Assembly: GCA_022605425.2 (NCBI GenBank)
Contig: CM061254.1
Coordinates: 1-64,000, forward strand
Reading direction: 5' to 3'
Source of the DNA: Hamiltosporidium tvaerminnensis FI-OER-3-3
Lineage: Eukaryota > Fungi > Microsporidia
Length of the DNA stretch: 64,000 nucleotides
How positions within the stretch are numbered: position 1 is the stretch's first letter; each line of letters begins with the position of its first letter. Under the pieces are notes generated by a model. That model did no database searches, was not told the DNA's origin, and saw only the letters and a program-made list of their open reading frames with translations. A program made the position numbers and the translations under genes. Shown piece by piece: positions 11 through 18,690 of the stretch.

Positions 11-668
11 CCTAACCCTAACCCTAACCCTAACCCTAACCCTAACCCTAACCCTAACCCTAACCCTAACCCTAACCCTAACCCTAACCCTAACCCTAAC
101 CCTAACCCTAACCCTAACCCTAACCCTAACCCTAACCCTAACCCTAACCCTAACCCTAACCCTAACCCTAACCCTAACCCTAACCCTAACCCTAACCCTA
201 ACCCTAACCCTAACCCTAACCCTAACCCTAACCCTAACCCTAACCCTAACCCTAACCCTAACCCTAACCCTAACCCTAACCCTAACCCTAACCCTAACCC
301 TAACCCTAACCCTAACCCTAACCCTAACCCTAACCCTAACCCTAACCCTAACCCTAACCCTAACCCTAACCCTAACCCTAACCCTAACCCTAACCCTAAC
401 CCTAACCCTAACCCTAACCCTAACCCTAACCCTAACCCTAACCCTAACCCTAACCCTAACCCTAACCCTAACCCTAACCCTAACCCTAACCCTAACCCTA
501 ACCCTAACCCTAACCCTAACCCTAACCCTAACCCTAACCCTAACCCTAACCCTAACCCTAACCCTAACCCTAACCCTAACCCTAACCCTAACCCTAACCC
601 TAACCCTAACCCTAACCCTAACCCTAACCCTAACCCTAACCCTAACCCTAACCCTAACCCTAACCCTA
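11..668 (+). repeat. Telomere, (CCCTAA)n / (TTAGGG)n, about 110 units
   Basis: Uninterrupted CCCTAA array at the contig start, in the orientation expected for a left chromosome end. Confidence 0.99.
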
Positions 669-1195
669 CAAACCATAGGCCGTTCTCTAAACTTTCACAT
701 GAACAAATATTACAAGTACTGGATGGGAAATCCCCATTCACACCGTCAAGATACATTTTTATTTACATTAACAATATTAAAGTCAATAAAATAAAATTCT
801 ACAAACTTGCGATAGAGTCTCTATCCGAAGGAACAAGTCGATATATTATCAACATGGATTTCATAAACGATGAAACTGCTGAAATTATCTGCCGAGAAGA
901 CAAAAAAGAAATAATAAACGAAGCATTTATCAAACTTTCTAGTAATTCATTAAGTAGATCACCAGAAATTGACAATAATGGAACTTTACACATCTGCATG
1001 CTTTTTGAAAGAATGAGAAAGATAATCAACAGAAGTACAAACACAAATTTAAAACTAAGACAATTAGCAGTAAGTATTCTATATACAAAGAGATCTGAAC
1101 TGCTCGACGTGTTAAAAAGTGTTAACATTGAGGCCAACGATGTTAATATGGAACCACGATCGGGATCTCTCAGTGATAACCATATAAATGGTTAG
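668..1195 (+). CDS. Retrotransposon ORF1, N-terminally truncated by the telomere (first internal ATG at 854)
   Basis: The frame of ORF 854-1195 stays open for 62 more codons back to the telomere (TNHRPFSKLSHEQILQVLDGKSPFTPSRYIFIYINNIKVNKIKFYKLAIESLSEGTSRYIIN-MDF...). Its C-terminus aligns with the element 2 remnant, and it overlaps the ORF2 ATG. Confidence 0.75.
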   Translation, partial: TNHRPFSKLSHEQILQVLDGKSPFTPSRYIFIYINNIKVNKIKFYKLAIESLSEGTSRYIINMDFINDETAEIICREDKKEIINEAFIKLSSNSLSRSPEIDNNGTLHICMLFERMRKIINRSTNTNLKLRQLAVSILYTKRSELLDVLKSVNIEANDVNMEPRSGSLSDNHING

Positions 1196-3932
1196 AACAA
1201 TTGGATTTATAAACGTGGGCGGTTTATCAAACTTGAAAATAGAAAAAATAAATGAAATTCTTATAAAACACAAACCCGATATACTATGCATTGCTGAGAC
1301 ATGGAGGAATAATATTTTTCCGCTACACAATGATTATAGAATAGTGGCCGTTAAGTCAGCCATAGAGGTTACGAACAGATACGCAAAAAAGGAGGGAATG
1401 ATAATTATATCTAAAAAACATATGGAAGTAAGAAAACTTGAAAACATTACGACGGCAGGCCTCTGCATTAAACACGAACAGACAATACTGGTCTTTATTT
1501 ATAGAGAACATTCAAGCTCTGATGAAAAAATATTAAACGAAGAACTTAGTTCATACACAGATGCAAATATTATCTGCATTGGCGATTATAACTTGGAACA
1601 AAGAGCAAATCTAGAACAAGACGTGCTGAATAACCATGCTAAGTACGGCTTAGCAGAGGTAAACTTGCACACGAAAACTTTTATACATAACGAAAAAAGC
1701 TCTACCCCAGATAAAGTTTTCGCTAATTGCCCAGTCATTACGGATATAAAAACTATAGAAAACATAAATCATAAGCTAATAGTAGCACTTCTTCCAAAGG
1801 CACAGAAATGTGAGCCTCCTAAATACAAAATAAACTTGATTAAAAATTCTGATATAAGAAATATGATAACAAAGAAAATAGAACAATATACGGAAAGGTC
1901 TATAAATATCTTAAAATTTCTAAACGTTAACAATAAATGCTTACTACTACATTCCATACTTATCAAGAGTATGCGAAGAATTGAACGTCGAGAAAGACTT
2001 CATGACCGTTCAAATCCTATTATTCAACATGTAAGAAAGCTGCGCGATAAAGCAAGGAAAACAAATGCGAAAGAATATGATGAATTTAGACGCGAGGTAA
2101 AAAAGCTTGCTAAACGATTTGATAACTCAAGCCTACCACGAACAAACTTAAGATACACAAGCTTACAAGCTTCTGAATTGGAAAAGGTTATCTTATTCAA
2201 TGGCAAGACTGAACGAAAGCATACTAAAAATATAAGAGAATTACTAGATAGTTTTATCTTAGACGGAAATATAAAAGAAACAGAGAAAACTATAAAAGAA
2301 ATTAAAAATTTCTACGGAAAAACCAATATGAAACACAATTACAACCAACAAGACATGATTACAAGCTTCACACTGGCAGAAGTTTCTGCTATGATTAAAA
2401 ATCTGAAATCGGGAAAGTCGGGTGGGATTACAGGAATCAGAAATGAATTTCTTAAAATATGCCCAGAAAACTTTATAAATGAACTTACGAATCTATATAA
2501 TGCAATATTAGATACACAACAAATCCCCGACTCTTGGAAAAGGCATAAAATCAAGCCCATTCCGAAGGATAAAGATAATTTCAGACCAATCGCCTTAATT
2601 GAACAAACGAGAAAGCTTTTTGAGAAGCTATTATTGACAAAGATAGACATAAAGTTGCATAGACAGCAAACAGGTTTCAGAGCAAAACATTCCACTATTA
2701 ATCACGCACTTGCATTAGATACAATTCTAAGACACGTTAACGGAAAATATATTTGTGTAACACTAGACATAAAGAAAGCGTATGACAGTGTCTTTAGAAA
2801 AAACTTGTATAAGAAACTTCTGAGACAACAAAACTTTTCGATCAAAGATACCACATTGATTGCAAACTTGATAGAAAACAACAGCTATACTATATGTCAG
2901 AAAAATACTGGTAATATAAAATTTAAAACGGCTGCCTTGGGTCTACCTCAGGGAAGTATTATCTCTCCTATACTATTTAATATCTTTATAAACGACATTA
3001 TTTCTTATATTCCGAAAAAATATAGATACCACATTTTCTTATACGCGGATGATATAGTCATCTACTCGACATGCATGGTGGCTCTAAATACCATAATTGA
3101 CGGACTTTGCAAACATGCGGCACACAATAGATATTTATTTAATCCCAAAAAATGTTTCTATAATGCAACGAAAGATTTGAACATATTTATATATGGAAAG
3201 AAAATTGAAAAACAGAACCCGCTTAAATATCTTGGGTTTTATTTCAATAACCGCTGTGCCGATACAAACGAGACTTTAAAGACCATACGGAAAAAATCTA
3301 TAAAGGCTGCGGTTATTACAAACAGAGCATTTAAAAGATCAGAATTTAATTCCTTTCATAACTTACCACAACTAAAGCTACGTGCATATAACATGTACGT
3401 TCGTCCACATATAGATTACCACGCTGTACTCTTAGGATGCAATACAACTTTTAACACTGCGGCAGACCGGATACAAAAAGGTGTTATTAAATTTATGTAC
3501 AATATATACTACCGAACCCCTTCCAAGATTATCTATGCGCTATTCCCGATAGAATCAATTCCCCAGAGAGTTGAAAGACTAAGATATAGTCTTGGCGAGA
3601 GAATACTACAAATGAAAAAGACGATAATAAGATTTGCCTTTCTTAGACTATTCAGTAAGAACATCAGAAATATCAAGAACGGAATTAAAACAATTAGAAA
3701 AAAATTTCCTAATATGGACGCTAAAGAAAGATTTAAGAAACTGAACAAAGAAAATCTTAGGGTTAATTTTACTATTTTCCAAGAAATTGAACTTTTAAAA
3801 AAGTATAATTTTCAAAATAGCAACAAAGCCAATTTTGAAAGAATAACAAGAATCTTGAGTCCATTTAGAAAAGAAAAAGAAATTTCAGAAATTTTAAACT
3901 TATTTCAAATGGCAAATATTGCCCGCCCATAG
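1188..3932 (+). CDS. Non-LTR retrotransposon ORF2: APE-type endonuclease plus reverse transcriptase (914 aa)
   Basis: APE motifs: INVGGL, PDILCIAETW, IGDYN, TF..STPD, INH. RT motifs: KSGGITGI.NE, WK..IKPIPK..FRPIAL, QTGFR, LDIKKAYDSV, GLPQGSIISP, YADD, KYLG. C-terminal Y..YVRP.IDY. No RNase H or CCHC knuckle seen. Confidence 0.97.
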   Translation: MVRTIGFINVGGLSNLKIEKINEILIKHKPDILCIAETWRNNIFPLHNDYRIVAVKSAIEVTNRYAKKEGMIIISKKHMEVRKLENITTAGLCIKHEQTILVFIYREHSSSDEKILNEELSSYTDANIICIGDYNLEQRANLEQDVLNNHAKYGLAEVNLHTKTFIHNEKSSTPDKVFANCPVITDIKTIENINHKLIVALLPKAQKCEPPKYKINLIKNSDIRNMITKKIEQYTERSINILKFLNVNNKCLLLHSILIKSMRRIERRERLHDRSNPIIQHVRKLRDKARKTNAKEYDEFRREVKKLAKRFDNSSLPRTNLRYTSLQASELEKVILFNGKTERKHTKNIRELLDSFILDGNIKETEKTIKEIKNFYGKTNMKHNYNQQDMITSFTLAEVSAMIKNLKSGKSGGITGIRNEFLKICPENFINELTNLYNAILDTQQIPDSWKRHKIKPIPKDKDNFRPIALIEQTRKLFEKLLLTKIDIKLHRQQTGFRAKHSTINHALALDTILRHVNGKYICVTLDIKKAYDSVFRKNLYKKLLRQQNFSIKDTTLIANLIENNSYTICQKNTGNIKFKTAALGLPQGSIISPILFNIFINDIISYIPKKYRYHIFLYADDIVIYSTCMVALNTIIDGLCKHAAHNRYLFNPKKCFYNATKDLNIFIYGKKIEKQNPLKYLGFYFNNRCADTNETLKTIRKKSIKAAVITNRAFKRSEFNSFHNLPQLKLRAYNMYVRPHIDYHAVLLGCNTTFNTAADRIQKGVIKFMYNIYYRTPSKIIYALFPIESIPQRVERLRYSLGERILQMKKTIIRFAFLRLFSKNIRNIKNGIKTIRKKFPNMDAKERFKKLNKENLRVNFTIFQEIELLKKYNFQNSNKANFERITRILSPFRKEKEISEILNLFQMANIARP

Positions 3933-3940
3933 TACTACCC

Positions 3941-3962
3941 CACAGCTTTTGGCCAAGTTGTG
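3941..3962 (+). promoter_or_regulatory. 3'-UTR stem-loop with UUGGCC loop (element 1)
   Basis: CACAGCTT-TTGGCC-AAGTTGTG: 8-bp stem with one G-U pair, 9 nt after the stop codon. Confidence 0.7.
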
Positions 3963-4335
3963 AGAAACGTTAAAGCAAACTTAAAAAAAAAAAATAAAAA
4001 ATAATAAAATAAAATAATAGATATACTCATAATGAAAAATATTTTATAACGTAAAAACAAAAATAATAAAATAGAAAAGAAAAACCAAAGATATTTTAAT
4101 TACTTAAACCAAAATGAGTATATCTTATACGTAATAACCACTATTTTGAAACTGTGAGAAAAATTAAATATTTTTTATAACAAAAGAAAAATATAATAAT
4201 TTACTTTATTTGAAAACCATGTGAAAATTTTTTAAGCAATCGACGGATTCGGAATCATTAGCAAAAAATTGATATTTTTTTATTTGCTAGAATATGAACT
4301 TGCAAGAAACCTTCAAAAACATTAAGAAACGTTAC

Positions 4336-4473
4336 GGCAGGGAGCCCGAAAGGGACATTACTGCCATATTTTTATAATTTAAAAATCACCGGAGTTTTAT
4401 GAAATATGTTGACTACCCCGGTCAACATATAATTGTAGTGAGGAGGGGGTGTTGCTCCATTGAGTCTTTCTGG
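4336..4473 (+). other. Structured RNA module (GAAA-tetraloop motif plus a two-hairpin domain), copy 1
   Basis: GGCAG-GGAG-CCC-GAAA-GGG-ACATTA-CTGCC. Perfect 10-bp hairpin at 4404-4430 and a second hairpin at 4442-4458. Confidence 0.6.
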
Positions 4474-4538
4474 AATTTAAATACATTTTTTGTTTTAAAT
4501 TTTCAGTTTGTTAAATTATTTAAATAAAATCCATTTTC

Positions 4539-4697
4539 CCTAATAACAATAATCGTCTTAAGAGATTAGTCATTAAACTGATACAAAGTAGGGGAAGGGA
4601 CTTGTTGAGTATGTTAGAAAGCCTTAACATTCGGGCCAAAGAAGTTAAGGAAGAAGATGCACCTGAAAAAAACCTAGATCTTACCTATGAGTTCTAA
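4539..4697 (+). CDS. ORF1 C-terminal remnant of element 2 (5'-truncated; absent from the ORF track)
   Basis: NNNNRLKRLVIKLIQSRGRDLLSMLESLNIRAKEV aligns without gaps to element 1 NTNLKLRQLAVSILYTKRSELLDVLKSVNIEANDV. Both overlap the ORF2 ATG in the same +1 register. Confidence 0.75.
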   Translation, partial: PNNNNRLKRLVIKLIQSRGRDLLSMLESLNIRAKEVKEEDAPEKNLDLTYEF

Positions 4698-7428
4698 AAT
4701 AGGTTTTATTAACATAGGAGGCTTATCAACAATAAAAATTACTAAAATAAATAACTTACTACAATTACATAAACTAGACATCCTGGGTGTTGCAGAGACA
4801 TGGCGTGATGAAATAATTCCCCTGGATAACAACTACAAGATTCTGACAACAAAGCCATCATTAAGAGTAGACAGTAGGTATTCTAACAAAGAAGGGATGA
4901 TAGTTATAACGCGGAAGAACATTAAAGGAGAGATAATTGGAGAGATTACGGATTTTGGAATTTCAATAAAATTCGATAATCATATCCTTGTCTTTATCTA
5001 CCGTAGCCTGTCTAGCAATGATCATAATATAATAAAACCTGCAATACATGAGTTAACAAATCAAAAAATAATAATACTTGGAGATTATAACCTCGAGCAA
5101 ACTCGTGAATTGGAAGACAAAGTTTTGAATAATCATATGAACTATGGTCTATACGAATTAGATCTCCATGCAAACACATACAAACATAAGAACAAAATAT
5201 CTTCACCTGATAAAATTTTTTCTAACACCCCAATAAGAACAGATGCCATAGAAATTATAACAATAAACCACAAATTGATAATAGCAGAAACCTTTGAATT
5301 GCCTACTTCAGCCATTCCCGGGTATAAAATAAATTTAATAAAAGATAACAAAATAAGAAGTAAAATAACAAAGAGAATTGAAAAACTTGTTACAAAAAAT
5401 AAAGTTATATTGCAAAACCTAAATATTGAGGAGAAATGTAACTTCCTACACAAAATATTACTGAATGCCACGAGAATAATTCGGATCGTAGATAAGAAAA
5501 CAAAAAGAGGTAATCCAATAATTCAACACACAAGACAATTACGAGAAGCCCACAGAAACATACACACTGATACTTATAAGAAACTATGTTCTGACGTTAA
5601 AAAATTAAGAAGAAACTTTATTGAGGAAGAAATGCCTTTGGGTAACTTAAAACATGTTGGTTTAGAAGCATGTGAAGTGGAAAAAATAATAAAGTTCTAC
5701 GGAAAGGCTCAACCCAGAACAAATCTTTACCCTAAAGACTTGATAGACAAATTTGTACTAGATGGAAGGTACAATAAAGTAGAAAACACAATACAGGAAA
5801 TTGAAGATTACTACAGTAAAAATATTGAAAAAGGAGAATTTCGTGAAAACAAGATAACAGAGATCACGCTAGAAGAAGTTCTTAACAATATTAAAAGTCT
5901 TAAATTAGGCAAATCCGGAGGAATATCGGGTATAAGGAATGAATTTCTTAAGATATGCCCTAAAAACTTTGTTTCCGAACTTACAGATTTATTCAATAAG
6001 ATTATAGTAGACCAAGAAATTCCATCGTCATGGAAATTCCATCGAATCCAACCGGTACCGAAAGGAAACGACGACCTCAGGCCCATATCGCTTATTGAAG
6101 AAACAAGAAAACTTTTTGAAAAAATCATCTTAAGCAAATTTAATGTCCAACTTCATAAGCAACAGGCTGGTTTTAAGACAGGACATTCATCGCTTAACCA
6201 CGCGCTTGCACTCGACACACTCTTAAGACACAGCAACGGCGATATGATAAATGTAACACTTGACATTAAGAAAGCATATGATTCAGTTGACAGAAATAAA
6301 CTTTACAGGAAACTAATAAAACAGCAAAAATTTTCTATTAGAGACACAAAACTTATAGCCTACCTTATAGAGAATAACAAATACACTCTGTGCTCAAACA
6401 AAGCCACATCATTAGTGAAGACTGCATCAATAGGACTACCGCAAGGTAGCATTATTTCACCAACATTGTTTAATATATTTATTGATGATATTATTCACTT
6501 TATACAGAAAAGATTTAGACAGATGGTATTCCTATATGCTGACGATATTCTAATATGCGCACCAACGGTCCAAATTGCCCAAAATATCATATTGGGAATG
6601 GAAAGGCACTCAACGATTAATAATTACAGATTCAATCCGGATAAATGTTACTACAATACAACAAAAGATATCTGTATCAAAGTATACAACACTAATCTTA
6701 CAAAACAGAGCCCTCTAAAATACTTAGGTTTCTTCTTTAATAATAGAGGGGCAGACACGTTAAAATCTACCAAGATCATAAGACAGAAAGCTGTTAGGGC
6801 TGCAGTAATAATGAATAAAGTCATGACAAAGAGCATATTTTACAGAGAAGAAGATAAATTCAGAATGAAACTAAGAGGATATACTACGTTTGTGAGACCA
6901 CACATTGATTACTTTTCGCAATTATTAGGCTGTCAAAAAACCTTCCTTGATCAGGTAGATAGAATTCAGAAAGGTATAATAAAATACCTATTTAAGATTT
7001 ACTATCGAACACCCTCAAAGATAATTTACGCACTCTTCCCAATAGAAAATGCTTACCAAAGAGCAATTAGATTGAGGTACAATATAGCGTATAAACTAAA
7101 AAGAGCAAAAAACACAACTATTAGAAAATTATACTATAGGTTTAACTCAAAGAACCTGAAAAACATGAAAAACAATTATGTCAGATACCAGAAAATTTAC
7201 AAAAATGAAAGCTTTAAGATTAAATTAAAAAGAATTTTAAAAGAAAATTTAAGGTTAAACTTCAGAACATTTAGTTGGAGTAACACACTAAAAAAATACA
7301 ATTTCAAAACATGCACTAAAGACGAATTCTCACAGTTTTTAAATGTTATACGAACAGAATACAAAAGAAGAGATCTTGGTGATATTTTATTAAAATTTAT
7401 CTTGATATACATAAGCCTCCCACATTAA
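4687..7428 (+). CDS. Non-LTR retrotransposon ORF2: APE-type endonuclease plus reverse transcriptase (913 aa)
   Basis: INIGGL, DILGVAETW, LGDYN, SSPD, INH, LRPISL, QAGFK, LDIKKAYDSV, GLPQGSIISP, YADD, KYLG. Collinear with 1188-3932. Confidence 0.97.
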   Translation: MSSKIGFINIGGLSTIKITKINNLLQLHKLDILGVAETWRDEIIPLDNNYKILTTKPSLRVDSRYSNKEGMIVITRKNIKGEIIGEITDFGISIKFDNHILVFIYRSLSSNDHNIIKPAIHELTNQKIIILGDYNLEQTRELEDKVLNNHMNYGLYELDLHANTYKHKNKISSPDKIFSNTPIRTDAIEIITINHKLIIAETFELPTSAIPGYKINLIKDNKIRSKITKRIEKLVTKNKVILQNLNIEEKCNFLHKILLNATRIIRIVDKKTKRGNPIIQHTRQLREAHRNIHTDTYKKLCSDVKKLRRNFIEEEMPLGNLKHVGLEACEVEKIIKFYGKAQPRTNLYPKDLIDKFVLDGRYNKVENTIQEIEDYYSKNIEKGEFRENKITEITLEEVLNNIKSLKLGKSGGISGIRNEFLKICPKNFVSELTDLFNKIIVDQEIPSSWKFHRIQPVPKGNDDLRPISLIEETRKLFEKIILSKFNVQLHKQQAGFKTGHSSLNHALALDTLLRHSNGDMINVTLDIKKAYDSVDRNKLYRKLIKQQKFSIRDTKLIAYLIENNKYTLCSNKATSLVKTASIGLPQGSIISPTLFNIFIDDIIHFIQKRFRQMVFLYADDILICAPTVQIAQNIILGMERHSTINNYRFNPDKCYYNTTKDICIKVYNTNLTKQSPLKYLGFFFNNRGADTLKSTKIIRQKAVRAAVIMNKVMTKSIFYREEDKFRMKLRGYTTFVRPHIDYFSQLLGCQKTFLDQVDRIQKGIIKYLFKIYYRTPSKIIYALFPIENAYQRAIRLRYNIAYKLKRAKNTTIRKLYYRFNSKNLKNMKNNYVRYQKIYKNESFKIKLKRILKENLRLNFRTFSWSNTLKKYNFKTCTKDEFSQFLNVIRTEYKRRDLGDILLKFILIYISLPH

Positions 7429-7436
7429 AATGAAAC

Positions 7437-7460
7437 GGTTGACTATTGGCCTAGTTAACC
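7437..7460 (+). promoter_or_regulatory. 3'-UTR stem-loop with UUGGCC loop (element 2)
   Basis: GGTTGACTA-TTGGCC-TAGTTAACC: 9-bp stem with one G-U pair, 9 nt after the stop codon. Confidence 0.7.
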
Positions 7461-7488
7461 TACAACACACAAAAAAACAAACACAAAA

Positions 7489-7702
7489 GGCGGGGAGCCA
7501 GAAATGGACGATACCGCCATATTTAAATATTTGGCTTGATTTACACTGCGAGAAGAGATTGGGGACTAGTAACGAGCGCGAGTTGGCCATGGGAGTTAGA
7601 CCCCCCAAAGACACAGTTGCATTAAAGGGGGTCTTATTGCATATATGAGCGCGGATCATTAATACCCTTTATGTAAGGGCTATACAGTAAGAGATAAGTC
7701 AA
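7489..7702 (+). other. Structured RNA module, copy 2
   Basis: GGCGG-GGAG-CCA-GAAA-TGG-ACGATA-CCGCC. AGACCCCC (7598-7605) is complementary to GGGGGTCT (7627-7634), and TTGGCTT/AAGTCAA could form a closing stem. Confidence 0.6.
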
Positions 7703-8039
7703 TCGTAAAGAGGTGATAGTTTTATTAAAAACTAGCAGTGTGCATAAAAGGTGATGACGACTGACGAGTAGACAAGGATGTTGTTTTCTTGCCTATTAAG
7801 GGTTGTTGTATGATGATCTTTAGGAGTTTTAGCTTGATTGAATATAGCCTGAGCCTAAAAGGAGTTAATTCCTGCTGAATAAAGTATGACAATAGGACCC
7901 CTTGTTTGATGTATAACATAGTCATCGGGTGGTCTTAAGGCTAGGAGAGTAGTTTAGTTAGTTTAAGACTTGTTAATAGTGACCCTAAAACTCTATAGTA
8001 AAGGTGGGTTAATCATTTCTAGAACTTTCTAGAAATATA

Positions 8040-10520
8040 AAAATATTTAAATAAAATTTCTTTTTCCTACTTAAAAAGTTTTTTTAATCTTATTTTATTG
8101 TTTTATTATAATTTCAAATTTTTTATATCTTAATGTTAAATTAAAATTGTTTCCTATCTAAAACATTTTTTATATTTCTTGCAATAATACGTACCTCTTT
8201 TTTATTTTTTTTACACGAAAATTTGAATTTTTTTTATTAAGAACTTAATTTGAATTTTCATTAAAAGTTTTTACCTGATTTTTATATTATCTATTTTGTC
8301 CGTCATAGAAATATTGAACTTATGCTGGTATATGTGTTACACATAAGCTTTGTTTCTATTTAAGATAAATAGTGTTATACTCCAATTTCGTTTTTTTTAT
8401 TTACATGATACTATTTTTTATATTTAGGTATATAAATCAATTATTTACATGTCTCAAAAATATATTTGTTCGTTACCTAAGTCCTTAATTCGGAAAACTT
8501 TGGTTTTCCTATTTTTTAGTGAGCATTCTTGATGTTTTTCTTGGATTAAGTCTAATTGTATTTAAATTTAAATTTTTGATTTGAAAGCAATAAAATAAAA
8601 TATTTTAATGTATTTTACACTTACACTAACTAATTTTTTAGTTCAGACAATATTACATTAAACTTTAAATTTTACAAAACATAAATGGAAAAACCATATT
8701 TTATCTAATTATATTCTGATAGCCTGTATTCAGTTATGGAATCTTCTTAATTCGACATATAAATCTTTAAATTTGTAATATGTAAGGTCAATGGCCATTT
8801 TTCACTCTCTAAACTACCATTTTTCTTTTTATATGAACCTTCTAACATTTACGTAACTAATAATCTCTTTTGGCATATTTTTATATTTTAGTGCCTCTGG
8901 TTTGTTTTTAAAGTTAGAATTTCATTGGTTTTTTGTCTTTCTTAGATTTTCTATATAATATATACGTTTTTAAAAATTCGTTCTAAAAGTGTTTGCTAAA
9001 CCGAAGGTTTGAACAATCGTTATAAAGTCAGTATAGTCTAAATTGGTGCCTCGTAATTCAGTTTGTGTCGTTTTGCAATAGCTTAGATTTATATTCTTTT
9101 CTTTCTTAATCAGCTGTTATTTTTTTCTTAGAACTTTTAATTATTTTTATTTAGTTTTTACTTTATCTAATACATGGTTTACTTTATTTTTCAAAATTTT
9201 ATTTTTTTAAACTCTAGACTGGTTTTTTATAACAATTTTGTATTTTATAAGACGGTTCGAGTATGGTTTGAAAATTTGTTTTTAAAGAAGGTTTAAAGAA
9301 TGCCTAAACTTTCGTTGGTTTTAGGTGTTTGACATTCTTTTAAAATAATTTACTTTTCTTAAGAGTTTTTATGTGTTTTTTTTTAATTTTTTAAACTATT
9401 TTCTAAATTTATTAGAATGATTTTTACTTATTTACTGGAATTTTTTAGTTGTAAAGTTTTTTATTTCTTTTAACCTATACTTACAATTTTTTTAAGTTTT
9501 TTATATGTTTTTACGTGTTCTTTCCCGGTTTTTTACGTTTTCTCTTAAATTTAGCTGTTTTTTCGTGTTTTTTTACAGCTTTTGGAATTTCCTAAATTTT
9601 TTATTTTTTTTTTAAAACTTTTTAAATTTTCAATTTTATAATATTTAGAATTTTAGACTTCCTTTATGTTTTATCTACTTATTTATTGATCGGTATATCT
9701 TCCGAGTGTCTTTTAACGTATTAATAAGAATTTTTTTTGTAAAACTGTATACTAAATGAACAATTATTGGTTTTTTGACAAAAATTTGAAGATTTTTTTA
9801 AAAAATTATCATTTTTAGAATTATAGCTCGGTAAATTTAGAAAAATTACCCCCGTAAAATTATTAAAGCCTAAACCTTGTAAAAATTACTTTTAAACAGT
9901 GCAGGTTTAACATATAGAATTTATTATATATGTTATATATTACTTTACTTTATTTTATTTTGATTTTATCTTTTTAATAGAGCTAGAATTTTATTCTCGC
10001 TACGAAATTCGAAGAATTTCTTAAAAAAAAAATATTTTTGGAAAAAATATTTATGTTACCATTCTTAATTACTATTTTCTGTTTTTATTAAGGAAAAATT
10101 TTGGAAAAATTTTTTAAATACAGTAAATAAAAATATAGATTTGGAAGATTTATGTTTGGTTTAATAAATTTCGAATAACTTCCATCTTTCAACAAAAATT
10201 ACTGTAAACTCTTAATTAAGATTGAATTATCCTTTTTTATAACTTAAATTTTAAGTTCTTTACTCAAAAATAGAAAAGTTAAAGCAAATATTTGCAACTA
10301 AAGGTGATCTCTCTTTAAATTTAAAATATTGTAAGATTTTAACTTGATTCTGTATGTAATAGTAGTTATTTTTTGCTGGTTTAAATTTAATTTTTATTTT
10401 ATAAAAAATTACTTTTTATTTTTATATCCTATTAAATATGTTTTAAACTAACTGACAGCATTCATCTTTAAGGAAATTGAATAAAATATAAATCGTAATT
10501 CAAATAATGGTAAAAAACAT
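8040..10520 (-). pseudogene. Probable decayed coding region (unidentified)
   Basis: Strong T skew on + (A-rich minus strand), short protein-like open stretches, and a hydrophobic start MFFTII*ITIYILFNFL at 10520. Many stops; no family recognised. Confidence 0.25.
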
Positions 10521-11247
10521 ATGTTTTTTGACTATAGTAAAAATAGAAACTTATATTTTTATAAGTATTATTAATTTACCTAAAAAGGAAATACCTTTGT
10601 AAATCTGTAAATATCTTATAAATCTTACTTATATCTAGTTTTACCAACTTAAAAACCCTATAGAGAATTCAGTAATGAATTGTACTAATAAAATTTTGAT
10701 TCAAATTTAGGTTTGTTTACACAATTAAGGAAATTTTGGTTTTCGAAAAAAGTAAATTTAGTTTTGCATGTTTTGAGTTAAAAAGTTACATTTTCTTCAA
10801 ATTTTATTTTTTTTTAAAAAAAATTCGAAGAATGTTTTTTGTAGTATCAAATTTTTGTTGAAAAACTATTTATGTACGTCAATTTTGAAATAAATCAACA
10901 AACCTATAGATTATTATGTTTCTTTTCGAAGAAAAGAAAGCGAAGGCAAGTAATATAGACACTTTTTGTATATATTTAATAAATATTCGTGATAAAATTA
11001 TTATTTATCATTTAAGCTAAAGAAAATAAGTTATACGTACAAAAAATAAATAAATTTTTTATTTTTTCACTTGTTAGATACGGATCATAATGGTATTGTG
11101 GATATCTGACAGGTTAAAGCCTTTATTGATATACCTTGGAATTTTATTCTTTAATAAAATACAATTTATTGACTTTACTTTTCGAAAACCATATACTTAT
11201 TTTTTCTTTAATACTTTTACTTTTCCTATTTAATATATTTTGAATAA

Positions 11248-11435
11248 ATATTCTCAATGAGAATATCAAAAGTGTCTCTCTAATAAAGTTTAAGTATAAT
11301 TGAGATTCTCGAAGAGAATATCAGAATTGAAGTTCATTTAAAAGACATAGGAGGGATATTCTCGAAGAGAATATTAGAATTGTATTATATTTAATGTATT
11401 ATTAATGTATATTTTCGAAGAGAATATCGGAAATG
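11248..11435. repeat. Four palindromic ~27-bp repeats with unique 26-28 bp spacers (period 53-55 bp)
   Basis: Consensus ATATTCTCGAAGAGAATATCAGAATTG at 11248, 11303, 11356 and 11409. Confidence 0.8.
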
Positions 11436-11797
11436 CAAAACTTTTTTAATTTTTATTATTTAAAATGATTTTACATTATTATTTTTTTTGATTAAGCAAT
11501 GACATAGGTAAAAGAAATTTAAAGAAATTTAGAAAGAATTTATTTGTCTATGTGAATTCATGAAATGATATTTTTGAAGATAGTAAAATATTTTTATAGG
11601 CGAGTTTTGTTTTAATTAGGTAAAATATGATTTGTAGGGTATTTATTTTTTTACAATATATTTAGCCTCTCTCTTAGAGATGAGTAAGTTAATAGAGATC
11701 TTATCAAGCTTTAGGAACGTATCATTATTATCTAAAAATTTGCAATTGGTTTAAAAAAAAAATATAAAAATATAAATATAGGTGAATTTTTAATATC

Positions 11798-12230
11798 GTG
11801 GCATCTTCTACTGTGGTACTCTTACTATGTCTATGGGTTAGGGATTATCTATCTCTTAGTAATAATCCTCCGATACCCTGATATATTTCTTTTTCACCAT
11901 ACTAATGTAGAAGCCATGAAACGCATGCCACAAATACGGAACGATTTCGTTCTTACTCTAATATTCGCAGCTGAATGTGCTTTTACTCTTACTATCTACG
12001 CTGATATGGTTTGTTAAAGGGCTTATGTAAGATTATTTGCATAAGTCTGGACATAAATACATAGGGTAGTAAAAAACTAACTCGTTCGATCTCGTATAAC
12101 AGTCGATTTTACTGCAATAAGTGAATTTATTCACTTATGAAAATGTTGATATATAATCGTATTAACATCAATACCTGTTTTACAGTATCTCTAAGGCAAT
12201 GAGCTCGATAACGGGACAATATTGCCTATT
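11798..12230 (+). ncRNA. Candidate structured non-coding region
   Basis: Nested stems 11798-11817/11896-11931 and hairpins at 12019-12048, 12117-12138, 12143-12168 and 12195-12226. The mismatches are G-U on the + strand. Confidence 0.4.
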
Positions 12231-12350
12231 TAGATGGAATACTTTTTTAAAGAATGTATATAAAGCAAGCATTTTTAGATTTAAAAACTTATAATACAAT
12301 AGGGCCTCTTCTATATGAAACTAAATAGAAATTTCGAATTATCTATTTAT

Positions 12351-12488
12351 CCCTAATCTTACCAACCTAACTTGCTCTTTGTGTATCTAACCCTCTCCTA
12401 ATAAACCTCAAATCAAAATCAAATATTGTATATGTCTTTGGAAAAACTAATTTCCGTTTAAATAAATGTGTTCGCCCTAACCCCTAAC
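12351..12488 (+). repeat. Degenerate interstitial telomere-like hexamers
   Basis: CCCTAA at 12351, CTAACCCT at 12387, CCCTAACCCCTAAC at 12475-12488. Confidence 0.5.
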
Positions 12489-15066
12489 TATTTTAAGAAT
12501 CCAAATGATGTATGGATTTACCAAAAGTTTACTCATTAGTAAAAAAACAAAAATTCTCAATTTTTAAATACATTTAGCTTTATTGAAGATTGAAAAAGTA
12601 GGGAATCTAATTTTTCTGCTAAATATTTTTTTTAAATTTTAGTGTTAAATATTGACCAAATTGATATTCTACAATCTTAAATCTCTTTTTCTTTATTCAA
12701 TTTTATTTTGAGTCTAAAATACAAATATTTTGTTCGAGAATGAATCGACATTATTAGCACAACGTGAAGTAACCACAATAATAATTTCAATCTGAAACAT
12801 AAATCAAATATATTTTCAATATTATTTATACAAACTATTTATCTGAGATTATAATTTATTTTGATGAGTCGCTTTGAGTGCTTACGAGAGATTCTCCAAG
12901 GACTTTTATGTTTTTTTCTAATATTGTGTCTTTTTTATAGGTTTGTGCTCAGCCAATTTTTTCTGTGCAAACTCGAAATGATATTTTATAAATAACATAG
13001 GATAGGTCGTTGGAATATATCTTGAAAATTGTAAGAAACAATTTCATTTAAGAATGGGCTTTGAAATTTAAATCAAATCAGTATTTTCGCAATATTTGGA
13101 ACTTCTGAGTTTAGTCTGGCTAATTTGGCAAGAGAACTACTTTGAGAACGTACTATCTTTTGTTCAAATATACATCGAAGCCCTATAGGTTTATTTTTTA
13201 CATGCTTATTAGATAACGAGTTTTGAAGACACTTTGGGCAAATTTTGAAAAAATTTGTGATTTAGAAAATCTTAAATAGAACATTGACTAAAAAGAATGC
13301 AAAAATAAAAAAAATATAGATGGTGCAGAAAGATTAAATGCTCATTTGAACTAAATAAAAAGAGTTAAAATAAAATATCGTTTTAAAAACATTTCGTTGT
13401 ACAATTTTGTATTGGAAATATTTTTTTTGCCTCTGTACTGATACAATTTTATAATATTACAATTTTCAATTGCATTTTTGTCGATTATAATGACTTCGAG
13501 TGTTTTTTTAAGGTGGACAAAACTAAGATGCATTAATTCTCTCGCTTATAAAAAAAAATATTTAGAACGATTAATGCTTAATAGATTTCAGAAGTTTTAT
13601 TTGAATTTTAAGTTATATTACAAGTATATAAGAAAAAACGATTATAATGTTAACATTTGGACGTTGAGTCTATAGTAAGAATTTTTGTTTGAGAAGAACT
13701 AAATTACGCCTTTGTTTTTTCAAAGTCAAAGGTCACTCAATAAAGTTTTTGTGAGCTTGTATAATTTTGAAGTTTACCTTCTAGAGTTTTTATTTTACGT
13801 ACAATTTGATTTATTTGTGTAAATAAATTATATCTAAATCGCAAAAATAAAATACTCTTTTTATCAAGATTCTGTAATTAAGGCGGAAACAATTCAGTAA
13901 AAAAAAATATTTATGTTAGGTATCAATTCCGAATCTAAAGATTTAGTTTACATTGAATAAAATTATATATTGCTTGTTCATATACATAAATTTTCTTGTT
14001 TAGGTTCGCGTATTTAAATTGAAGATTTGAAATTTTTATTGCTGTTGCTTTAAAATTCATTTAAATGTGTTTCTGAATTAGGTTCGAATGTTGTATCAAC
14101 TATCATCTGATTAATCAATTTAAATATAATTTTTTGATTATTTGTCAATAAGCGTTTGTTCTTTTTTTCTAACCTCCAAAAGAAATCTAAACCTAAGGAA
14201 TTTAGAAAATAAAGAGTTTGAGTAAGACAATTGCTTCATCTGAATTGAATGCTTAGGGGTAGAGTATGATTCTTTCAGACTTAATCATATTTAGTTTTTT
14301 TATTTACTAAAGTATTGCAAAAACCAGCTTGGATAAACAAATTTTAACCTTTATTCAAATTTCTTCAAGGATATACAATTTTTTTCAATTTCACTACTTA
14401 CACCTTGGTATGTAACATATTAAATATTTAAATAACTAACCGAACTATGCTCGACAATAATAAAACGTTTAAATTGAACATTATACTGATATGATATCCG
14501 TAAAATGTAACTACAAATTCTGATTTTCAGTTTCTGAAATACGCATAAATATTTGTGTAAGTTTTTGTTTTTTATCACAAAATTATTTTATAAAAGCTAT
14601 TTCAATCTATATCTTATTGTAAAATTAAACGGAATATCTGTTTAATTTTAATGGTTTATGGTTGGAAATTTAATTAAAAAAACCCAAAAGTATTTATTAG
14701 TGTGTTTTTTATTTCTTAAATAATAACTCTTCTTGTAAATTGTTCTTATTTAAGTTCATTTGAAAAGCTATATTATTTTTTGCATTTTTAATAATTTAAA
14801 ATAATTGCTAACGGAATTAAATTTAGAATATTATTTTTAAAACTTCCGCCACGCAAAACGCTGAGCAAATAGTAAAAAGAATTAAATACTTGCAGTAAAG
14901 ATACTCATAATAATTGGATATTGAAAGTATTGATTGTCTATGAATTAATACTTGCAATATATTAAATTTCTTTTGTAGAATATTATTCTTAGAAGTCAGA
15001 AAAAAAATATTTGATTCAGATTAAAGTTAATAAAAGATATGAACAGTAAAAAATTCTTTAATCTAT

Positions 15067-15729
15067 AAAATATTACATAGTATCAAAAAATAGTTGGGAG
15101 TGTTTCTTTATTTCATGATTCAATGTGATTCTAGGTTTAAATAAATAACTGCTAACATCAACACTCTTTTGGTACCCCTTAATAACTTACACCTCAAAGC
15201 CTTTCATTTAAAAAGTGAGCAAAATGACATTAATGGCCGAGGAAGGTGTCTGAAGTGTGATCTTAAGTGGAAGCCAATCTTAGACTACCCAATGATTATG
15301 CAATATTCGAAATACTCTACATTCTCTGAATCTAATGAACTTCTGGTTAAGACATATTTTATGCCTTACATAGATTACACAGATGTGCGACGCCAAGCCG
15401 ACGGGTATATCCGCTACTTAGCTTTTCCTTCTTTAAAGGGTTTTTTTATTGCTAAGTCTTCAAACTCGAGTGAACAAGCCTAGGTTTCGATGCTTTTACT
15501 CGCAATTACCTAGGAATTCGGTTTCGGCCAAGTTACATAAAAACTACAAAATGGATTTGTATAAAAAGTTTCTAAGTTTACTAGACCTTCTTCTGCGAAT
15601 ACAAATCCGAAGGAACAACTAAAATTCTAGTGTGGGTTGATTTTCACAAAAAAATATAACATTGATCTTATTAATTCCATATAGTCATTGCTAAGTAAAA
15701 AGTTTTTTAGGTGGTTATCTTTTCTCCAC
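15067..15729 (-). mobile_element. Family A non-coding interspersed element (diverged copy)
   Basis: Collinear blocks shared with 38217-38943 (CAAAGCCTTTCATTT, TACTCTACA, GCTAAGTCTTC, GTTACATAAAAACTACAAA, GTGGTTATC). Confidence 0.8.
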
Positions 15730-17734
15730 GCTTCTTCATTAATATTTCATATAAAATCGCAAATCAATAGAATTTAACATTTAAAAATTTTGCGTTATTC
15801 TTTATTTTTTTGTGCTATAATAACGAATCATCATAAGCTGATTTCAGTTAAGTTTTGGATTTAACCATTTTGAAGATAATCGATAAAATTTTATTTTTAC
15901 CTCTGAAATTTATTGAAAAATGAATTTATTAAATCTAAAAGTGTTTTTGCTCTTTTGAAAGTTATATATTAAAATATTTAATGGGATAAGTCTCTCATAA
16001 ATACTACTTGTTCTGAAAGTTTACAATTTTTTAGGACATCTTTGTTGTCAAATCATGAAAATCATAGAAAATAGCAGTAAAAATAAAAACTTAGGTGCTT
16101 TGAGGATTTAGAAAACAAAACACTTCTAGAATTTAAAATATTTGCCCTTCATATGAAATGAAAAATTATTTTACAAATTTCTTGTATTGTGGTATATTAT
16201 TAACATCCAAATTTGAATATTAAGTCTTGATATTGCTTATATTTCAAAATAAGTCTATATTGCATATAGTATTTGTAAATTAAATAGTTATTCTACAACT
16301 AAAGTGAAAGAAAAGTCGTGTATAAAATTATTTTAAGTATGAAAGGGCGATTATGTGTCGTATTAGGAAATATTAGATGCGTTGAACTCCTTGGACTATT
16401 TAAAAAAAAAATATTGAAATTTTTAGAGAGCTAAGTGAGCTCGAATATGAAACCTGTAAATAAAATACATATCACATTTAGAATAAGACTAAGGTCTTGG
16501 AATTTAGGAAATCTTGTTATATGTAAAAAAAATTGACAAGAAAATCTAACTATGCAATAAAAAGCAGGAATCCTACAATGAAATTTCTATAAAATTACTT
16601 TACTGTTTTATGTGTATACGATACTTTCAATATAGATAAATAAATATAGTTCTAACCGAAATTTTTTTCAGCTATATTATAGAAAATTTATTAAATTGTA
16701 AACGAAGCATACCATTTGTAAATCTCAATAAATTATATAATTTATTTTTCGATCCGATATAAAAAAAAATCTTTAAACAGTTAGACTGGACTTTATTTGG
16801 TTTAAATGCCCCCAGAACTACTTCATTTTTATAACGGTCTATTCAAAATTTATAACGAACTATAAATTATATTTTTAAAGAAGTTCTTGAAAATCCGCAA
16901 GCAAAACATAACAAAAAAGATAAAACTTGGTCTAGAAACATGATATTCGGCACAGATATGTATTTTTTGGTAAAAAATTTAGTAAAAAAGCATATTAAAG
17001 TCAGAATCACTCCACGGGATTTGCTTTAAATTAGGCAAACAAAAAATTTACGCAAATGATTTGTGGCCAGAGAAACTTGATTTTATTATAAAGTTAGGTT
17101 GACTTATTTCTTATATTTTATTTCAAAATGGTTTATTAGCTGATATAATAAAAAATATATTTGATGTATGATGTCGCTGTTAGAATATAGGCGGTCATCA
17201 AGTCGATTTTACTTTAAGATACAATTGAAGTTTCTTATTTTATTCAAAGGAGAGGAGCTATGGTAAACAAAATATAAATCCAGTTTTAAAGAAAGCATAA
17301 CGAGGGATAGATGTAGGAAATATAAACACAGTGGATGTAGTTTTAATTTAAAATATTTTCAAGGATGTTTTAGTTTATTCTTCGAATATTCTATTTAAAT
17401 CATTAATTAAAGATTGAATGAAAATGAAAAAAATTTCAAACCAAAATATAAAAATCAGTCGAACCATAATGAAGCTAGCTGTATGGAAGTGGAAAAAATC
17501 AAATAAATTAGAAAATTTTTAACAACCAACTAGTCTAAAATCCAAAAAATTGTGACAAATTAATATTATTTGGTTTTAAGTTTTAATATATATTGATGAA
17601 ACTAAAATTTTACAAAGAACATATCAGAACAGTTATCTTTATACAAAAAACAAAAATTTTCCTAAAAACCTCTAAATGAATATTTTTTGAGGTCATATTA
17701 GACATAATAAACTTAAATTATAGAAAATCAAATA

Positions 17735-18690
17735 TTTCTATTTTCATTTCGACATATTTTCCCCATAAACTTCTTCCAGGGCTTTAATGAAAATTTTTTA
17801 GCCACACTTTTAAGTTAGGTTTGAAATTTTTAGAAAGCATTGAAATCGTTCGAATCATTAACTAAGTCAACTCTAACACCAGACCTATCAAATCTTCCAG
17901 ATCGACCTACACGATGAATATAAGTTTCCACCTTTGGTATTCCTTTAACTATTGGAAGATCAAAATTTATAATTAGGTTTACCTGTGAAATATCCATTCC
18001 TCGTAAAAATTTATTTGTTGAAATCAACGTAAGAGCCTTTGCAGTTCTAAAATCATGCTCTAACTTTTTCTTATGCTGCCTTTTAATATCCCCATGAAGA
18101 CATGCTTTTTCATGAAGATCAGCCCCTAATTCTTTTCTTAAAACCTCAACCATATGTTTGGTTGCAACAAAAATTATAGACTGCCCTACTCTTAAATATT
18201 CATATGAAGATTTTATTGCTTTCATTTTTTTTCTTTTCTCTCAGTTTCTAAATAATATGGTTTTATTTCTTCGGGTTTTAAATTTTCCTTTTCATACATA
18301 CAAATGGCTTCCGGCCAAAAATTTTTAATCACTTTTTCAAACGTGGATAGAAAGTAGCAGAGAAAATATTTTTCTTGATTTTTATGACATTTTTAAAATT
18401 CTATATGCATGAGAACCAATACCATCTAAAACCGCATCCGCCTCATCAATAACTATAATTTTAACTGTTGGAGCTTTTTTATTATCCATGCTACATAACT
18501 TCAAAATACCACCCGGACTTCCAACAATAATTTCTTGATTCCCATATTCTACATCCGGTTTTACAATAAAAACTTATAATTTTGGCTCTAAAAGTTTAGC
18601 AATCACACCAAAAACCAGTTGCTTCAAAACTCTTGTTGTTGTCGGGTTACTGCTTGCAAACTACGTTTAGAAACACATTTTTGAAGAAGA
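17735..18690 (-). pseudogene. DBP5: DEAD-box RNA helicase Dbp5/DDX19-like, frameshifted pseudogene
   Basis: Minus-strand fragments in different frames: IIVGSPG, VIDEAD (18436-18447), FSATF, VGQSIIFV, LHG, STN..RGMD, NFDLP, YIHRVGRSGRF. The N-terminal Q/Walker A region was not found. Confidence 0.8.

Follow-up and report, generated by a model that had tools for sequence, protein, structure and literature searches.

The window analysed here is the first 64 kb (64,000 nucleotides) of contig 9 in the genome of Hamiltosporidium tvaerminnensis, a microsporidian parasite of water fleas, whose assembly comprises 21.64 Mb in 17 contigs with about 24% GC and TTAGGG telomeres. Because positions 16-668 consist of about 108 CCCTAA units, the chromosome tip lies at the left, and the window's plus strand corresponds to the C strand. 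Reading inwards from the tip, the telomere is followed by a first element, a second element, the 3' region of a third, the short tract CCCTAA CCCCTAA CT (12475-12489) and then other DNA. The features of this stack, all on the plus strand, are as follows.

16-668, plus strand: terminal telomere array on the C strand, its 5' end forming the tip of the chromosome, about 108 CCCTAA units in all
665-668, plus strand: CCTA microhomology at the junction of the telomere and element 1
669-4540, plus strand: element 1, 5'-truncated, 99% identical to a full-length copy on contig 4 (~5405-9805)
668-1195, plus strand: C-terminal half of element 1 ORF1
1188-3932, plus strand: element 1 ORF2, with APE endonuclease and reverse transcriptase (RT)
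3933-4540, plus strand: element 1 3' UTR
4517-4540, plus strand: conserved 3'-terminal motif of element 1, with AATAAA at 4523-4528 and the terminal CCC at 4538-4540
4541-4543, plus strand: telomere-register tag of element 1, TAA, in which the T is common to sister copies and the AA is ambiguous
4544-8067, plus strand: element 2, 5'-truncated within ORF1, its ORF2 50% identical to that of element 1
Up to 4697, plus strand: remnant of element 2 ORF1
4687-7428, plus strand: element 2 ORF2
7429-8067, plus strand: element 2 3' UTR
7983-7988, plus strand: internal CCCTAA of the element 2 3' UTR, for which a GGGTTA-like stretch some 30 nt further downstream is a potential pairing partner
8044-8069, plus strand: true 3' terminus of element 2, with AATAAA at 8050-8055, CC at 8066-8067 and the tag TA
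8070-12477, plus strand: element 3, of which the 3' region alone is left, with AATAAA at 12461-12466 and CCC at 12475-12477
12478-12489, plus strand: innermost tag, forming with the preceding CCC about 2.3 degenerate telomere repeats (12475-12489)
12490-18129, plus strand: subtelomeric segment truncated at 12490, with a 98% identical paralogue on contig 13

Both ORF2 reading frames in the window are intact and encode proteins of about 913 amino acids; the ORF2 protein is 99% identical to a Hamiltosporidium tvaerminnensis reverse transcriptase. The RT domain is recognised with confidence (RVT_1, E 1e-31), while the Exo_endo_phos match is weak and below the cut-off, and a PDB sequence search with ORF2 returned RT matches of the R2 and group II intron type and no endonuclease match. 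An AlphaFold2 model of the endonuclease region (pLDDT 88) has as its best PDB fold matches the endonucleases of L1, TRAS1 and R1Bm, and residues N9, E37, Y105, N135, D175 and H195 are invariant across seven elements that are only 24-50% identical. The copies show variable 5' truncation with intact 3' ends. On the strength of the modelled fold, the elements are assigned as two-ORF non-LTR (LINE) retrotransposons with a predicted N-terminal APE-fold endonuclease and a central RT.

The telomere joins element 1 at CCCTA|CAAAC, position 668, as a preliminary description of this DNA had noted. The full-length copy on contig 4, whose ORF1 encodes 351 amino acids, reads CCTACAAACC at the corresponding point; since this copy has CCTA within ORF1, the telomere was added onto an already 5'-truncated element 1 at a 4-nt match. 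The live telomeres observed in this genome measure 500-650 bp, and a gene for a TERT RNA-binding domain is present. The genome thus retains telomerase alongside these elements, as the TERT gene and the 650-bp CCCTAA cap attest. Ahead of the repeats, positions 1-10 of the window read ACGTATTGCT at the contig start, which looks like a remnant of nanopore ligation adapter, namely its tail, retained in the contig; if so, the read would have begun at the physical end of the DNA.

The 3' ends of the three elements

CCCTAA occurs seven times on the plus strand within 669-12489, against 1.6 expected, and two of the occurrences, at 5730 and 5958, are those already cited in the preliminary description as grounds for caution. 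That caution was well placed, for a single hexamer proves nothing, and the significance of CCCTAA at the junctions arises from the comparison of copies. At the first junction CCCTAA lies at 4538-4543, directly after TTTT. Three other copies of the element 1 3' UTR are found, on contigs 4, 5 and 6; in these the homology runs about 560 nt beyond the A-rich tract, and in all four copies it stops at CCC(T), with flanks that are all different. The loss of homology at this point in the three other copies identifies the hexamer as the true 3' end of element 1, as had been proposed. The contrary outcome that had been envisaged was that other copies would stop in the A-rich tract that follows the UUGGCC hairpin; the aligned copies run past that tract to the CCC(T) of the hexamer. 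Here AATAAA begins 18 nt ahead of the last C. The AA at 4542-4543 is ambiguous, and may represent tag, element 2 or the start of a poly(A) tract, because AA stands at the corresponding break point in the contig 1 copy of element 2 as well. CCCT alone certainly belongs to element 1, and the tag of this element is anything from T to TAA.

On contig 5 (~122587-124943) and again on contig 6 (~884957-887300), the truncated 3' end of an element 3 family member is joined to an element 1 copy whose truncation point is ORF2 residue 563; the 3' flanks of this chimera differ between the two loci. It may reflect a segmental duplication, or a co-transcript retrotransposed as a unit. Nothing else in the genome matches the flank of the contig 5 copy, and an empty-site comparison there gave no insertion footprint.

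Homology to element 2 ORF1 does begin right after the first CCCTAA, as had been described: the C-terminus of the ORF1 of a relative aligns from about 4542-4545. The second CCCTAA (7983-7988), by contrast, is not the 3' end of element 2 for which it had been taken, as the sister copy on contig 1 stays homologous for 81 bases further, to 8069. The two copies share at 8067-8069 a terminal motif of the element 1 type and then diverge. It had also been remarked that the two 3' regions were of similar length, at 611 and 560 nt; the former figure holds for element 1 (3933-4543), but that of element 2 is about 641 nt, because the contig 1 homology reaches 8069. A hairpin between the internal CCCTAA at 7983 and the GGGTTA-like stretch downstream was considered and rejected, its stability being no better than that of shuffled sequence (z about 0).

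Element 3 was recognised because 8054-12480 is colinear, at 91-93% identity, with positions 52382-57026 of contig 13, which there follow an ORF2 of a third family. The 3' region of this family, of about 4.6-4.8 kb, is AT-rich and without an ORF, which is unusually long for a LINE, and it holds tandem sub-repeats around 11226-11432. On the proximal side, the paralogue of 12490-18129 on contig 13 sits 4.6 kb proximal of the array on that contig, and both contig 13 and the orthologue in H. magnivora read straight through the point at which contig 9 switches to repeats and element 3. The innermost junction (12475-12489) is probably the relic of a very short healed telomere.

A common terminus and the bases that follow it

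All families share a terminal motif, TAT-T/A-T/C-AAATAAA followed after 7-8 nt by TTCC(C), of which the variant in the third family ends in CGCCC. A genome-wide scan with this motif yielded 16 real ends and eight chance hits, and a reversed control pattern also gave eight hits; because the chance hits equal those of the control, the set of element ends is close to complete. Contigs of H. magnivora carry the same element ends. After the terminal CC the bases continue as TAACCCTAA... for 1 to 14 nt, in the register of the C-strand telomere repeat. Among 20 independent junctions from the two Hamiltosporidium species, the bases that match in register beyond CC total 90 nt, where 11.7 nt would be expected and the maximum in 200,000 simulations was 34. 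Matches of 5 nt or more are found in half of these junctions (10/20; p about 2e-26), and the chance hits match for only 0-2 nt. Tag length clusters by family (permutation p 0.02), and tags stop at 7-8 nt with the sole exception of the innermost junction on contig 9. This clustering and ceiling fit a defined RNA end. No poly(A) tail or run of A follows the terminal CC(C) at any junction examined, and none of the roughly 20 junctions retains a proximal repeat tract of more than about 2.3 repeats.

The position of the polyadenylation signal is also informative. AAUAAA begins 17-18 nt ahead of the last C in 11 of 13 ends, and in H. tvaerminnensis the mean distance from A[A/U]UAAA to the mRNA 3' end downstream of it is 20 nt (PMC10542269). 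Because the spacing matches that of the mRNAs of the species, the predicted cleavage site falls within the tag. Next to 5'-truncated ORF2s, where any telomere must already have been lost, tags of 7 nt are present, and these would derive either from the RNA or from a fresh telomerase seed. More generally, the tag bases may have been copied from the RNA, added by telomerase as a seed or left over from a former telomere. The fixed register across families that are 24-50% identical argues that the RNA tail pairs with the G strand.

The preliminary description had offered two accounts of the hexamers, either that the RNA ends in CCCUAA and uses it to anneal to the TTAGGG overhang or that they are what is left of eroded telomeres, and both hold in part. 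For the first, CC(C) and the register recur in all families and in both species, but the full CCCUAA is not needed: CC(C), or CCCU in element 1, is fixed to the element, and what follows of the repeat is anywhere from 1 to 14 nt long. For the second, the innermost junction does look like such a relic, with about 2.3 degenerate repeats on a truncated segment, much as at a healed break. It is nevertheless highly improbable that all of the hexamers are nothing but telomere left over from successive erosions, with no role in pairing and nothing encoded by the element. CC(C) belongs to a motif that every copy and family has conserved, and its spacing from AAUAAA is fixed; the register is fixed to the element; and random relics would be expected to vary widely in length and phase, rather than to cluster by family beneath a ceiling of 7-8 nt.

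Full-length elements start at the ORF1 ATG, or no more than 3 nt from it, right after the motif and tag of the element upstream (L047:1690-1730, L048:670-710, contig 11 at about 660092, and contig 4 at 5380-5410). The idea that the motif is instead the 5' end of the downstream element was rejected, as it stays with the upstream 3' UTR whatever follows. By analogy with HeT-A, the 3' end of the upstream element may serve as a promoter for the next. One might go further and suppose that the motif is solely an expression signal, a poly(A) site and/or a CCC-box promoter for the next ORF1, whose likeness to the telomere is coincidental. This would account for AAUAAA at the expected distance from the end and for full-length neighbours that begin at ATG directly after the motif, but we regard it as extremely improbable, since it explains neither the TAACCCT continuation past CC in 10 of 20 junctions with unrelated flanks nor the confinement to chromosome ends in a single orientation.

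Two conserved hairpins follow the ORF2 stop codon in most families (in the window at 3933-3975, 4325-4370 and 7430-7520), a short one with a UUGGCC loop and one of the form GGC-A/G-GGGAGCC...GGGAC...GCC, and they recur in copies that are otherwise unalignable. They may be candidate binding sites for the RT. An Rfam scan of positions 600-13000 gave no match at E up to 1, and so neither a ribozyme nor a hairpin family.

Orientation of the arrays and how they begin

All 53 ORF2 matches in the genome have the 5' end toward the nearer contig end, and all lie within about 185 kb of a contig end, the elements being arrayed head to tail with their 5' ends tipward. Many of the arrays are located 10-180 kb from contig ends, so that addition to ends would require later burial by other DNA. 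On contig 13 an intact element lies proximal to one with a stop codon, and the rule that the outer element is the younger is therefore not strict. At the end of contig 15 no telomere is found, and the sole element there is a decayed member of another family.

Two arrays reveal what lies beneath them. That on contig 9 sits on the terminal truncation of a segment that continues in contig 13 and in H. magnivora. The element 1 copy on contig 4 sits on a truncated subtelomeric repeat with at least eight other copies; the five of these that were examined all continue upstream, and the contig 4 copy alone is cut off. No target-site duplication was seen around this full-length copy, the DNA upstream of it is unrelated to the repeat downstream, and there is no insertion footprint. 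Judged by these paralogues, the contig 9 and contig 4 arrays appear to be truncations capped by an element and not insertions.

The repeat beneath the contig 4 copy (9806-10697) is itself polar. It recurs at over 40 further sites, and many contig ends have it within about 170 kb; copies near contig starts are on the plus strand, those near contig ends on the minus strand, and at least nine are 93-95% identical. Also on contig 4, the telomere sits directly on a block (498-3820) that is internal on contig 2 (1784905-1788206; 92% identity), which looks like another healed terminal truncation or a subtelomeric exchange.

The conserved endonuclease keeps another explanation in play, namely site-specific insertion of the TRAS/SART kind, in which APE would nick the G strand at the base of the telomere or at a resident tag, the RNA tail would pair with the nicked strand, and the short tags would be a split or duplicated target. 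The endonuclease fold and catalytic residues are conserved in all families, which argues that they are used; the sharp ceiling of 7-8 nt on the tags could be that of a target-site duplication; and some intact elements lie proximal to more decayed ones. TART keeps its endonuclease too, however, so that conservation is not decisive for nicking. Random nicking in telomeres of about 100 repeats would leave long proximal tracts, where about 20 junctions show 2.3 repeats or fewer, and every insertion would have to strike the last one or two repeats. Moreover, on contigs 9 and 4 the distal flank does not resume the interrupted sequence, the paralogues show truncation, and the contig 4 full-length copy lacks a visible target-site duplication. 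For these reasons nick-dependent insertion is considered unlikely.

A proposed route of addition, and known telomere-associated elements

The reading that we favour, and regard as reasonably probable, is that the 3' end of the element RNA pairs with, or supplies, a short G-strand seed on nearly bare chromosome ends, the elements stacking outward and telomerase recapping the stack. The transcript would be cut about 20 nt after AAUAAA, leaving an RNA end, itself inferred, of CC(C) and a few telomere-complementary bases. This tail would align with a G-strand 3' end bearing at most about two repeats, whether an eroded, a broken or a freshly seeded end, and reverse transcription would start there without copying a poly(A) tail. 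At an end devoid of telomere bases the tag would be copied from the RNA, and at one with a leftover seed the seed would be retained. The 5' side would be truncated by further erosion or by incomplete copying, and the truncated element would then receive either another element or a telomerase cap. The primer is taken to be an end nearly without telomere because the junctions keep about two repeats at most, compared with 500-650 bp in live telomeres; the overhang of a normal, long telomere, which the preliminary description had implied as primer, does not fit, as no junction keeps more than about two repeats.

Arrays might also be built within single events, if the RT ran off or stopped early on one RNA and jumped to the 3' end of another. 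Several downstream neighbours extend all the way to the ORF1 ATG, separated from the element upstream by nothing more than TAAC or TAACCC, an arrangement hard to obtain by slow erosion. Yet decay differs within arrays (on contig 11, for example, from one stop to more than 12 stops), and such template jumping is judged very unlikely. It would in any case still require a tagged RNA 3' end, and so would modify the proposal of pairing at nearly bare ends without replacing it. A more speculative extension of that proposal, which we put forward tentatively and think rather doubtful, is a two-tier system of repair, in which telomerase would serve normal ends and a guild of APE-LINEs, whose RNAs would acquire through poly(A) cleavage a tag resembling the telomerase template (CCUAACCCU), would rebuild lost ones, the motif perhaps also driving the next element. 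If true, this would amount to a LINE-based intermediate between telomerase telomeres and those of Drosophila.

Retrotransposons dedicated to telomeres have been described in insects, Giardia, Chlorella, rotifers and some fungi. Among known systems, the closest in function are Athena/Coprina, in enzyme TRAS/SART, and in architecture HeT-A/TART and Zepp; each known system differs from the present elements in a defining feature. Athena and Coprina (Gladyshev and Arkhipova 2007, summarised in PMC8557442) are endonuclease-deficient Penelope-like elements that reside at chromosome termini, coexist with telomerase, and end 3' in short reverse-complement telomere repeats thought to prime on G-rich overhangs. 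The Hamiltosporidium elements share with them the terminal location, the reverse-complement telomere bases at the 3' end (here at 20 junctions) and the presence of telomerase. In place of a Penelope-like RT without endonuclease, however, they are two-ORF LINEs with a conserved, predicted APE endonuclease; the hammerhead ribozyme motifs of Athena and Coprina have no counterpart among Rfam ribozymes in 600-13000; and the tag is only about 1.3 repeats or less. An ordinary APE-LINE has here acquired a device known from Penelope-like elements that lack an endonuclease: its 3' end matches the telomere repeat.

TRAS and SART are telomere-repeat-specific LINEs of the R1 clade in Bombyx and other insects. 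They resemble the present elements in combining APE and RT, in their fixed orientation to the telomere repeat and in a 3' UTR that determines where reverse transcription begins; the TRAS1 endonuclease, as noted, is among the best structural matches to the ORF2 model. Osanai et al. (2004) reportedly found that telomere-like bases after the SART1 tail sharpen initiation. TRAS and SART nevertheless lie inside long repeat arrays with repeats on both flanks, whereas the proximal side here has 2.3 repeats or fewer, and they end in poly(A), which is missing here.

With HeT-A, TART and TAHRE of Drosophila the elements have in common head-to-tail stacks at chromosome ends, 3' ends that face the centromere and inner members that are variably 5'-truncated. 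Addition to ends, which the two arrays seated on truncations suggest here, and a promoter in the upstream 3' end, which is a possibility here, would be further points of likeness to HeT-A and its relatives. The junctions in Drosophila are, however, of oligo(A) and not telomere-register tags, and Drosophila is without telomerase, where the present genome has a TERT gene and a 650-bp repeat cap. Drosophila-like stacking at ends with telomerase still present would place this organism between two ways of end maintenance.

In Zepp of Chlorella, copies truncated at the 5' end are capped directly by telomere repeats, as element 1 is at position 668, though Zepp ends in poly(A) and the elements here do not. 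Cnl1 of Cryptococcus forms subtelomeric LINE arrays in a telomerase-positive host (bioRxiv 10.1101/2021.08.11.455996). Such arrays in a telomerase-positive organism are a feature shared by Zepp, Cnl1 and the present elements. MoTeR and FoTeR belong to the CRE clade and have a restriction-like endonuclease. They are telomere-restricted non-LTR elements of filamentous fungi with TAACCC-type flanks, and 3-7 full repeats follow the 3' ends of FoTeR (PMC7367193, PMC12857005). The fungal lineage, the restriction to telomeres and the TAACCC-type flanking repeats are thus shared, but the endonuclease here is of the APE type and the tags are shorter.

A 2023 survey of telomere-dedicated retrotransposons lists none from Microsporidia (PMC10088271), the H. 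tvaerminnensis genome papers (PMC10542269, PMC12449221) make no mention of such elements, and a literature search found no description of them in Microsporidia. The elements explain part of the subtelomere structure that has hampered the assembly of large microsporidian genomes, and their many independent junctions offer material for studying the priming of reverse transcription at DNA ends. The nearest ORF2 matches outside Hamiltosporidium are unnamed or generic entries. Two relatives of ORF2 outside the genus were found in Logan assemblies (SRR30862795 and SRR18067263), on contigs that extend about 50 nt past ORF2; they are 29-33% identical, have 42-52% GC, and keep a short endonuclease in which TEH or TGH replaces the usual SDH motif.
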